A stretch of DNA of 64,000 nt from Mobula hypostoma (Eukaryota), in contig NC_086117.1 of the NCBI RefSeq assembly GCF_963921235.1, positions 43,214,001 through 43,278,000 of the forward strand, written 5' to 3'. Shown here in pieces: positions 38,181-62,324 of this stretch; the first letter of the stretch is position 1, and each line of letters begins with the position of its first letter. A model generated the notes under the pieces. It did no database searches and had not been told where the DNA came from. It saw only the letters and a list, made by a program, of their open reading frames with translations. The translations under genes were made by a program, and so were the position numbers.

Positions 38181-38937
38181 TGTTACATACCCCGTAACAG
38201 GATAAAGGACCAGCAGAAATAGAACACACTTGGAGTCTGGTTTTGCTGTTAACTAATTCTATTTTATTAGTAACTACACAATATAGTAATAAAACCAGAT
38301 AAATCAAACGGGTTAGCAGAGTTTATGCATATATAGGTGCCGAAATATAAAACCCAAACTCCTTCAACCTTAGGTGGTAATTGATACAGTCTTACAATGG
38401 TACATAAGCAAAGTCAGTTCAGTTCGTGATATTGNNNNNNNNNNNNNNNNNNNNNNNNNNNNNNNNNNNNNNNNNNNNNNNNNNNNNNNNNNNNNNNNNN
38501 NNNNNNNNNNNNNNNNNNNNNNNNNNNNNNNNNNNNNNNNNNNNNNNNNNNNNNNNNNNNNNNNNNNNNNNNNNNNNNNNNNNNNCGTAAGCTGATGCTG
38601 TCGATTCTTCCTGTTGTCCTCCGAAACTCCCAAGTTAGCCAAACTTGATCAACTTGAGTGCGCCGTCTTCAAGTGATAAACTACCAACCCAGGCAAGGGT
38701 TAGACACACTGGTAGACTCCACAGGGTCGCTCTTTCACGCACTAATAATCACAGATCGATTCCTCTTCATCGATCCTCGCTCCCACACTCGTGGGCACCT
38801 GAAAGTGTAGTGGTAATTTCACCACACCTTAGTGCGTCTGTGTGTCCTTTTTCTTGTGTGTCCAAAAGTCAGTCTCATTCTCCCAACATTTTAAAGTGAC
38901 AGTCCACAGAAAATATGAACCCTAGGGGTACATAACA
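38181..38937. mobile_element. Solo LTR (or gap-collapsed LTR element) inserted in CR1
   Basis: TG...CA ends with imperfect inverted termini TGTTACATACCCC / GGGGTACATAACA. Perfect 5-bp TSD GGCAC (38176-38180, 38938-38942). Spans the N gap. Confidence 0.8.
38435..38585. other. Assembly gap (151 N)
   Basis: Run of N. Confidence 0.99.
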
Positions 38938-60522: not shown

Positions 60523-61159
60523 TCCTTTTATTCCCACTATTTGCCTCCTCTCAATCAGCCACTGCTTTGTCCGTGCTAGGATCTTTCCTGTAATACCATG
60601 GGCTCGTAGCTTGTTAAGCAGCTTCGTGTGACACCTTGTCAAAATCCAAGTACACAACATCTACCTTTTCTCCTTTGTCTATCCTGCTTGTTACTTTTTC
60701 AAAGAATTCCAACAGATTTGCCAGGCAAGATTTTCCATTGAAACCATGCTGACTACGTCTCTAGTGGGCTCAACCACGAGCTTTCCAAAAAGACATCTCA
60801 TAGGCACTCTAGAAATTTCCCCTCCTGTATCCAGCACCAACCTGATTTTCCCAGTCTACCTGCATATTGAAGTCCCCCATGACTATTGTAACATTGCCCT
60901 TTGGTATGCTTTTTCTGCCTCTTATTGTAATTTGTAGGGAAAATTCTTACTACTGTTTGGGGACCTGTATACAACTCCCATCAAGGTCTTTCTACCCTTG
61001 AGTTCCTAAGTTCTATCCCCAACGATTCAACATCTTCTATGTCACCTCTTTCTAATGATTGGATTTAATTTGTTACCAACAGAGCAATGCCGTCCCTTTG
61101 CCTTCCTGCCTATCTTTTCGATACAATATGTAACCTTGGATATTAAGCTACCAGTTATA

Positions 61160-61729
61160 GTTGTTCAGTTGTTTGTCCATTGTCAATGTCGATAAGGACT
61201 TCGACACCATTATGATGGTGTCGAGACTAGCACTTGATTTGGATTTAAGTGAGGGAGAGTTGCGCAGCGTCAGCCTCACTCTCTCTTTCCATTTCCCACC
61301 TGGATCCAGTGGCAAGACAGAGTCGAGATGGCTGGAGATGGGACTAGGCGCAGTGGATGACTGGGACGTCTACTGTGTCTTGTCCTGCTCTACACGTTCC
61401 ACGACGCTTGCAGAGACCACCTTCTTGACCGTTGGATCTTCCATTGGTCTCGTCTGGTCAATCCACCGGAGTCTGTCTTCACATGCTGGAATAGACAACT
61501 CCCTATCTCACCGAGGGTTTGAGACCCTTTGGCTCCCCTCGCCTGGTTTAGCCAGCTTGTCAAAGCTGTTGCCCGGGGTGTGGCAGCTGTCACATGCAAA
61601 CAGCTACAAGGAGCCACAGGTGAGAGCTGAGTGCCAGGTGGGGACCAAAAATAGACTAACCGCCTTGAAAAGGACGCGACATGTTCCCCCACCAGAGGTG
61701 ATACCCCTCCCTGACACCCCTTACACCCC
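61160..61729 (-). mobile_element. 570-bp non-coding retroposon (probably RTE-related, non-autonomous)
   Basis: 10-bp TSD ACCAGTTATA (61150-61159, 61730-61739) in the CR1 EN region. 3' hairpin TCGACACCAT/ATGGTGTCGA and CAA-rich tail. No tRNA head, no TE-like ORF. Confidence 0.85.
61538..61729 (-). ncRNA. HDV-like self-cleaving ribozyme at the 5' end of the retroposon
   Basis: P1 GGGGUGU/ACACCCC, P2 CUCACCUGU/ACCAGGCGAG, P3 GGC/GCC, U-CC/GG P1.1, P4 CAGCUU/AAGCUG, J4/2 GCUAA (candidate catalytic C at 61551). Correct nested double-pseudoknot order. Confidence 0.75.
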
Positions 61730-62324
61730 ACCAGTTATAATATTTCAGCCATGATTCAGTGATGCCTACAACATCATACCTGCTAATCTGCAACTGTGCT
61801 GCAAGTTCATCTACCTTATTCCTTATACTGCGTGCATTCAGATACAACACCATCAGTCCAGTATTCACCCTTTTTGATTTTGTTCACCTTTTACATTGCA
61901 ACTCATCCTGTTGATTGCAATTTTGCCCAATGAACACCCTCTTCTCACTAGACATTGCTTCTGTTTGGTGAACCAGCTACCTCATCTTCAGCACTATGAC
62001 CTGCCTTTCTTACGATACTTCTTGCATTGAAATATAGGCAACTCAGGTCACTAGTTGCACCATGCGCAACCTTTTGATTCCTGTCTTTGTCTGAGGTTTT
62101 ACCAACATTTCCCTCCGCAACCTCTCAACTAACTGTTCTGACACTCTTTTCCCAACGCCCTGCAACTCTAGCTTTAATCCCACCATGCAGCATTAACAAC
62201 CACACCCCACACCCCAGTTCAGGTGCGAACCGTCCCTCTGTACAAGTCCCACCTTCTCTGAAAGACAGCCCAATGATCCAAAAATCTTATGCCCTCCCTC
62301 CTACGCAAATCCTTAGCCACTTAT

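Follow-up and report, generated by a model that had tools for sequence, protein, structure and literature searches.

How might a short retroposon that bears no evident RNA polymerase III (pol III) head come by a sharply defined 5' end? The question is raised by a 570-nt insert on the minus strand (61729 to 61160) of a 64,000-nt stretch from the ray Mobula hypostoma (NCBI RefSeq assembly GCF_963921235.1, contig NC_086117.1, positions 43,214,001 to 43,278,000 of the forward strand), which we call the window and from whose first letter all coordinates are counted. A first-pass annotation, made from the letters of the window alone, had read the insert as a member of a short interspersed element (SINE)-like family headed by a self-cleaving ribozyme of the hepatitis delta virus (HDV) type. 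Our analysis, which compares the insert with its family in sequencing runs and with related long interspersed elements (LINEs), leads to much the same picture: the insert is very probably a decayed, non-autonomous retroposon derived from an RTE-like LINE, with an HDV-like head that is predicted from its sequence to cleave itself.

An HDV-like fold at the 5' end of the insert

Two observations fix the boundaries of the insert. It is flanked on either side by the same 10-bp direct repeat, ACCAGTTATA on the plus strand, and contigs from four public DNA runs contain paralogues of the surrounding host LINE in which the insert is missing and 61150 is joined to 61731. The 580 bases skipped in these empty sites equal the 570-nt insert plus one target duplication, and the boundaries given in the first-pass annotation are therefore exact.

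Within the first 194 nt of the element, every component of the HDV-like double pseudoknot is present in canonical order, that is, the helices P1 to P4 and P1.1, the joining segments (J) and the loop L3 (Table 1). The target duplication is followed directly by G1 (61729), with which the element begins, and cleavage is predicted immediately 5' of this base. Most of the pairings had been proposed in the first-pass annotation and stand after recomputation: P1 pairs at all seven positions; P3, the UCC-GG pairing of P1.1, the P4 hairpin led by GCAA and the GCUAA of J4/2 are all where they had been placed; and P2, drawn at first between 61624-61616 and 61547-61538, is right and extends to 10 bp (61626-61617 with 61545-61536), with a single A.C mismatch in the window copy owing to C61541. 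P1.1 is formed by GG at 61574-61573 (element nt 156-157) and the CC of the UCC that opens L3. The putative catalytic cytosine, C61551, sits in GGCUAA, and J4/2 and J1/4 agree with the HDV context G-C-N-A-A and GG/CC. Indeed, J1/4 and J4/2 are nearly letter for letter those of what we take to be the genomic HDV core, ...GGGCAAC-P4-GGCGAA...

Two parts of the head are larger than in a minimal HDV fold. L3 contains an inserted hairpin, GCUGU/ACAGC (61604-61600 with 61590-61586), which is conserved at 5-6 bp and corresponds to the AGCUGU/ACAGCU of the first reading, and its total length of 28 nt exceeds the short, conserved L3 of about 7-8 nt that is characteristic of HDV. J1/2, put at roughly 100 nt before, is 96 nt long and has the hairpin ascribed to it, which RNAalifold recovers. 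At the base of this domain a 10-bp helix of the P1.2 type, also from RNAalifold, pairs the second GGGGUGUCAGG unit (61719-61710) with CCUGGCACUC (61638-61629) and ends two bases before P2. J1/2 is also the region in which subfamilies differ most. A second GGGGUGU at 61720-61714 had been suggested as an alternative P1; it serves mainly as the 5' strand of the J1/2 helix, although some copies of the element do start there (see below).

Table 1. Coordinates of the retroposon copy, its flanks and the parts of its HDV-like head (window positions; nt, element nucleotides)
Feature	Position	Strand	Remarks
Whole non-autonomous retroposon copy, 570 nt	61160..61729	-	
Target-site duplication, element's 5' side	61730..61739		ACCAGTTATA on +; direct reading; empty-site joints
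Target-site duplication, element's 3' side	61150..61159		direct reading; empty-site joints
P1 5' strand GGGGUGU	61723..61729	-	nt 1-7; 7 pairs, invariant in five lineages
J1/2 peripheral domain, 96 nt, long hairpin	61627..61722	-	RNAalifold on five lineages; 7 two-sided pair changes
P2 5' strand CUCUCACCUG(U)	61616..61626	-	nt 104-113 for the 10-bp part
P3 5' strand GGC	61613..61615	-	nt 115-117
L3, 28 nt, starting UCC (61612-61610)	61585..61612	-	nt 118-145
P3 3' strand GCC	61582..61584	-	nt 146-148
P1 3' strand ACACCCC	61575..61581	-	nt 149-155
J1/4: GG (P1.1 partner), then GCAA	61569..61574	-	invariant in five lineages
P4 hairpin CAGCUU-UGAC-AAGCUG	61553..61568	-	61568-61563 with 61558-61553; nt 162-167 with 172-177
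J4/2 G-C-U-A-A-A-C	61546..61552	-	C61551 counterpart of the HDV catalytic cytosine (C75)
P2 3' strand CAGGCGAGGG	61536..61545	-	nt 185-194
Remaining body derived from LINE 5' untranslated region	61216..61535	-	nt ~228-514 common even to LINE lineages with other heads
Part derived from LINE 3' end: stop-codon region, ...GGACGAAC-like end, CAA-rich tail	61160..61215	-	

The family, its LINE relatives and their 5' ends

Sequence words from the element are present in DNA and RNA runs of a dozen organisms. Each DNA run shows a summed word depth of at least 10^5 over the length of the element; the family is therefore highly repeated, and it is so in at least eight related species. As a rough guess there may be about 10^4 copies or more, from a summed depth of about 3-5 x 10^5 against about 8-20 for single contigs, with the caveat that depth is not copy number. 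To describe the family we used Logan contigs from six organisms (seven runs) aligned to the window. Between the window copy and the family majority there are at least 34 differences (about 6%), 13 of which reflect CpG decay. At 61541 the majority base (G>A on the plus strand, about 99% of depth; U in the RNA) restores the P2 pair that is mismatched in the window copy, and the majority sequence has perfect P1 (7 bp), P1.2 (10), P2 (10), P3 (3) and P4 (6) helices.

Variation within the family also follows the fold. The second pair of P4 (61567/61554) is A-U in the window copy and G-C in the family majority and most LINEs, with G.U intermediates seen. In a SINE subfamily assembled from loose-end consensuses at 61573-61576 (...GG-UACA-CCGC...GCGG-GCUAAACCAG), in which UACA replaces GCAA, the same pair is C-G. 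The two bases that follow UCC in L3 (61609-61608) are UU, CC, AA or UA according to group, which fits an unpaired linker. There are at least two SINE subfamilies, another of which has a strongly diverged J1/2 interior (loose ends at 61633-61649).

The origin of the element becomes apparent from its relatives, which were reached by a protein search with translations of its spurious open reading frames (ORFs). Matches to the sense ORF were called ORFs on contigs of one ENA assembly (ERZ26859072) and of two Logan runs. At five loci of the ENA assembly (L001, L002 and L005-L007) the same head stands at the start of a LINE of about 4.09 kb, whose copies are 99.3-99.7% identical. This LINE has an 837-nt 5' untranslated region (UTR), an ORF of 1069-1076 aa where intact (three copies; split in two in L001 and L007) and a 3' UTR of about 45 nt, which in the ENA copies ends ...CGUCGACAACGACGGACGAAC and then (AAC)n; in the 1069-aa ORF, Exo_endo_phos covers residues 7-160 and RVT_1 residues 555-825. 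The LINE 3' UTR ends in ...GGACGAAC, to which (AAC)n, (ATC)n or (AGT)n is added. Such a layout, with a single ORF for an apurinic endonuclease (APE) and a reverse transcriptase (RT), no ORF1, a very short 3' UTR and a short tandem-repeat tail, is RTE-like, and we infer the affinity of the partner LINE from this layout rather than from RT phylogeny. The five loci represent a young and probably active LINE family with a protein cluster of 230 members. The same head occurs in other lineages, namely L017 (Logan), L011 (JGI metagenome Ga0224511, from a pattern scan), L003 and L004.

Positions 1-514 of the element and the first 513 nt of the LINE in L002 are collinear, with an identity of 74% for the window copy and of 78% for the majority sequence of the family. 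At the other end, the last ~45 nt of the element agree with the stop-codon region and tail of the LINE if CpG decay is taken into account. The element thus shares both termini with an autonomous LINE while having no coding capacity of its own, and because both ends match, we regard it as an internal-deletion derivative of such a LINE. The autonomous partner with the same two ends whose existence the first-pass annotation had anticipated was found in other assemblies (ENA, Logan, JGI and Tara metagenomes). In the ray contigs, 54 loose ends extend beyond 61213, where the deletion junction lies; this is no more than a hint of a partner in the same genome. The first reading had also pointed to a 10-bp stem and a CAA-rich tail at the 3' end, both of which are present. 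The stem, which is perfect (61224-61201, UCGACACCAU/AUGGUGUCGA), spans the junction of the parts derived from the 5' UTR and from the 3' end, and the deletion must therefore have created or completed it; none of the family-level variants listed falls within 61201-61224.

The divergence among lineages allows the fold to be examined by covariation. In an alignment (A3) of the window copy with L002, L017, L011 and L004, RNAalifold recovers P2, P4, the L3 hairpin and the long J1/2 hairpin. When the full pseudoknotted structure is imposed, 94.0% of cells are standard pairs, compared with 38-52% when the partners are slid by 1-3 columns. Eleven pairs have changed on both sides (2 in P2, 2 in P4 and 7 in J1/2), a number that none of 500 shuffles reached. 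The changes in P2 are C-G to U-A and U-A to A-U, and the second pair of P4 occurs as A-U, G-C and, in L011, U-A. Conversely, G1, UCC, GGGCAA and GGC-N-AA are invariant in the five lineages, the N of J4/2 being U or A. This is the pattern that would be expected of a constrained active site set between freely covarying helices. Of the helices in which the first-pass annotation proposed to look for covariation, P2 and P4 (and J1/2 besides) covary, whereas P1 and P3 are invariant and speak through conservation.

A descriptor search points the same way. The descriptor embodied generic HDV rules, with a long J1/2, an L3 of up to 40 nt and one P2 mismatch allowed. In the 128 kb of both window strands it matched only at G1 = 61729 and at 61720, and no match arose in shuffled sequence, whether from the window (40 dinucleotide shuffles, 5.1 Mb) or from the element (2000 shuffles; about 6 Mb for both shuffle sets together). 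Strict matches were obtained in L001, L002, L005-L007 and L011, and the window copy matches with its one P2 mismatch.

The 5' ends of individual copies coincide with the start of P1. Across 61732/61733 the depth of the family declines by a factor of more than 400 (about 40,000 before, about 100 beyond), and individual SINE contigs cease to match at 61729/61730 or at 61720 and continue into unrelated sequence; the 5' boundary of the family is therefore that of the window copy. No pile-ups of ends were found in the contig layouts, as expected of contigs. Among the near-identical LINE copies, the target duplications ACTGAAGAT(C), ACTAACATGTA and ATGTGTCATGT reveal differing starts: the first 9-nt unit is the start in L001, L002 and L005, with minor irregularities; L006 opens precisely on the G of the second unit, as L007 appears to do, although no duplication confirms it there. 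The L017 contig begins one base before GGGGUGU, and L011 also starts at a GGGGUGU. Copies and relatives thus start at G1, as the first-pass annotation had foreseen, or else at the second GGGGUGU. The two starts fit either of two arrangements: each GGGGUGU may serve as P1, giving two cut sites, or masters with one and with two units may coexist.

Not all relatives carry this head. At 60% identity or above, more than 1600 relatives of the LINE protein were found, mostly on contigs of about 4.1 kb from marine and other metagenomes, and three of the LINEs (L015, L016 and L018; 68-79% protein identity) share the 5'-UTR body and the 3' end while having other heads, in none of which the relaxed descriptor found a complete HDV fold. 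It would seem that the heads of these LINEs are exchangeable modules. In L015 (1-460; 74%) and L018 (1-290; 79%) the first 250-450 nt are unrelated and contain no recognisable ribozyme. The head of L016 (60-220; 68% protein identity), at the same 5' position, can be drawn as a P4-poor HDV-like fold, GGGGGGU ... ACC-UCCACGU-GGU-ACCCCCU-GG ... CUAA; it has a normal L3 of 7 nt, UCCACGU, and it scores 26.7 bits (E = 0.14) against Rfam drz-agam-1, below the gathering score of 37. The metagenome pattern scan also returned 5'-truncated, decayed copies (L008, L013) and four unrelated chance matches (L009, L010, L012 and L014), which were rejected. Whole ~4.1-kb elements of the LINE group occur as separate contigs in many marine metagenomes (for example L018, Tara Oceans ERR1726711), and one LINE fragment appears among deposited sequences as a bacterial hypothetical protein, from Alcanivorax profundi (RJG14924.1), most likely by contamination with animal DNA. 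In the ESM Atlas the LINE protein falls only in generic APE/RT clusters, mostly chordate.

The ORFs of the element itself are not genes. An antisense ORF of 197 aa on the plus strand (61161-61754) crosses the whole element and matches 'uncharacterized proteins' of Mobula birostris and M. hypostoma; deposited Mobula proteins of this kind, from antisense ORFs, look like an annotation artefact. Both it and a sense ORF of 113 aa were considered as genes and rejected, and homologues of the sense ORF in the LINE loci start upstream of the element.

As to the surroundings, the insert splits a LINE ORF in its apurinic-endonuclease part and has the orientation of that ORF (...LNARSIRNKVDEL...ITESWLK / insert / ...). 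This host is the endonuclease part of a CR1/L2-like LINE ORF on the minus strand (61000-61149 and 61740-61900), is itself very highly repeated (summed depth about 1.5-3 x 10^5) and has many paralogues without the insert. No second copy of the element was found within the window by blastn, and a run of 151 N at 38435-38585 marks an assembly gap or masked sequence.

Does the head cleave itself?

Several points weigh against a self-cleaving head. Known HDV-like ribozymes have a short, conserved L3, and the hairpin-bearing loop of 28 nt found here could impair the active site. The window copy may itself be inactive because of its P2 mismatch and a U at 61585, where the majority has G. The covariation sample consists of five lineages, among which P1, P3 and P1.1 never vary, so that these three helices draw their support from conservation and not from covariation. 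The descriptor was composed after the motif had been seen. At E <= 10, Rfam gave no HDV-family match for the head of the window copy or for L017, L011 and L004, from models that ignore the pseudoknot and do not permit insertions of the L3 kind; the region as a whole gave at this threshold chance matches resembling small nucleolar RNAs and microRNAs, and no ribozyme. Finally, the autonomous LINE with this head is known from other assemblies rather than from the genome of the window copy.

The foremost rival view is that the head is a structured 5' UTR serving some other purpose: it might be an internal promoter, an element for translation or ribonucleoprotein assembly, or an RT-binding site. 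Its HDV-like fold would then be real but not catalytic, and the 5' end of the element would be set by transcription initiation. What covariation proves is a structure and not its catalytic activity; the enlarged L3 is unlike the compact loop of proven ribozymes, and the Rfam models do not recognise the head. Moreover, conservation across LINE lineages extends downstream of the ribozyme into the 5'-UTR body, so that the UTR clearly has other functions, and a 77-nt head that is promoter and ribozyme at once is described for L1Tc (PMC3383444). A defined 5' end, taken by itself, would fit a transcription start as well. We nevertheless consider this explanation unlikely. It is precisely the residues of the HDV active site that are invariant (G1, UCC/GG, GGGCAA and GGC-N-AA, with N variable), and RTE-type relatives are documented to use such ribozymes. 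Since the 5' end falls on the base that opens P1 in a conserved fold of the HDV type, and does so at two alternative GGGGUGU units, we favour a ribozyme over a transcription start.

Chance complementarity in a G+C-rich LINE fragment is a very improbable source of the pairings. The motif was found by eye and the minimum free energy of the head is no better than that of shuffled sequences (z = -0.56, a measure that is uninformative for a pseudoknot), but a coincidence of this kind would have to be squared with about 6 Mb of shuffles devoid of descriptor matches, with pairings kept through compensatory changes in independent lineages and with a family majority that repairs the mismatch of the window copy. 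Next to nothing remains of the idea of an ordinary pol III SINE with a tRNA, 5S or 7SL head, a LINE tail and incidental ribozyme-like pairings, which would suit the size, copy number, target duplication and LINE-type tail and yet is already refuted by the collinearity of positions 1-514 with the LINE 5' UTR, no tRNA having been found in the element by ARAGORN and no tRNA, 5S, 7SL or small nuclear RNA by Rfam (E <= 10).

The first-pass view of a SINE-like, non-autonomous family is thus upheld by termini held in common with a LINE and, with no tRNA, 5S or 7SL head, the element is therefore not a pol III SINE. The best mechanism for its spread is that known for RTE, baggins, R2 and L1Tc elements (PMC6765202, PMC3774820). 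The family would have arisen by internal deletion of an RTE-like LINE, of which it keeps the first ~516 nt and the last ~50 nt. A copy, probably lacking a promoter of its own, would be transcribed within a longer host or read-through RNA, from which the predicted ribozyme would cut 5' of G1, leaving an RNA that starts at the first base of the element. The APE and RT protein encoded by the LINE would then recognise the common 3' end in trans, and the RNA would be copied into a newly nicked site by target-primed reverse transcription, giving rise to the 10-bp duplication.

More tentatively, the head may be an active HDV-like ribozyme of an undescribed structural type, with its L3 hairpin and P1.2 clamp, that lets a promoter-less RTE derivative amplify hugely across many ray species; we hold this stronger proposal to be somewhat more apt to fail than to hold. 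If true, it would make the family the largest of self-cleaving ribozymes known in a vertebrate genome, and thousands of sense-oriented intronic copies could cut host pre-mRNAs. If the ribozyme is inactive, what remains of the finding is a structured 5' UTR of a LINE, borne by a deletion derivative. With an active one, the element would be a clear case, in a vertebrate, of a short retroposon able to dispense with a pol III head, since the predicted ribozyme would define its 5' end, and as a natural variant with a hairpin in the very loop that builds the active site it makes the tolerance of the HDV core to insertions testable. For annotation, too, the family matters, through the antisense ORFs deposited as proteins and the sense intronic copies that could affect host transcripts.

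Comparison with known systems

The CPEB3 ribozyme is the textbook case of an HDV-like ribozyme in vertebrates: single-copy, intronic and minimal, it lies in a host gene and is non-mobile. The ray head shares with it the HDV-like fold in a vertebrate genome, but belongs to a mobile element with many copies, a family that, in contrast to the single-copy CPEB3 ribozyme, is among the most repeated sequences in several ray genomes.

Self-cleaving motifs are found on retroposons elsewhere. Schistosoma SINEs carry hammerheads, and twister variants occur on schistosome non-LTR elements (PMC6765202, PMC8501958). There, as is proposed here, a 5' self-cleaving motif defines the RNA end of a non-LTR element or SINE, although the ribozyme class is different. 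Closer in class is the head of L1Tc of Trypanosoma cruzi, which the non-autonomous NARTc shares (PMC3383444, PMC4035085). There, too, one HDV-like ribozyme at the 5' end is common to an autonomous LINE and its non-autonomous partner and frees the RNA from co-transcripts, as we suggest for the ray element and its LINE; in contrast to the latter, the Pr77 head of L1Tc and NARTc is 77 nt long, is also a promoter, is not known to have an L3 hairpin, and belongs to a different LINE clade and host kingdom.

Among deletion derivatives, the R2 SIDEs (Eickbush and Eickbush, 2012, PMC3414825) are built on the same plan: from the autonomous element they retain the ribozyme at the 5' end and the RT-binding part at the 3' end, the coding region is deleted and mobilisation is in trans. 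R2 ribozymes conserve P1.1, P3 and L3 (PMC3774820). R2 SIDEs, however, are confined to 28S rDNA, are co-transcribed by RNA polymerase I and have low copy numbers, whereas copies of the ray family are dispersed, with target duplications at a variety of sites, and the family is highly repeated in several species.

The nearest parallels are the HDV-like ribozymes at the 5' ends of RTE and baggins LINEs, which include a large type, drz-Agam-2, with a P1.2 helix in J1/2 (Ruminski et al., 2011, via PMC6765202; Webb et al., 2016, PMC4908430). In large HDV-like ribozymes P1.2 pinches P1 and P2 together and speeds cleavage (PMC4908430). The ray head resembles these in lying on the first bases of a LINE, with the predicted cut site at the first nucleotide of the element, and, as in the drz-Agam-2 type, in its long, structured J1/2 closed by a helix beside P1 and P2. 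RTE and baggins elements are likewise thought to be promoter-less and freed from read-through transcripts, and the partner LINE has, like RTE elements, a single APE and RT ORF, a short 3' UTR and a microsatellite tail. Unlike the RTE and baggins heads, that of the ray element has a 28-nt L3 with an inserted hairpin and an elasmobranch host, and the copy studied here is a non-coding deletion derivative that has been amplified far beyond its LINE. The literature we searched, of which coverage is incomplete, yielded no paper linking HDV-like ribozymes with elasmobranchs, in keeping with the first-pass statement that no description in cartilaginous fish was known, and none describing an expanded L3. 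The kind of element described here is thus familiar from RTE, the R2 SIDEs and NARTc, while its hairpin-bearing L3 of 28 nt and the scale of its amplification look new.

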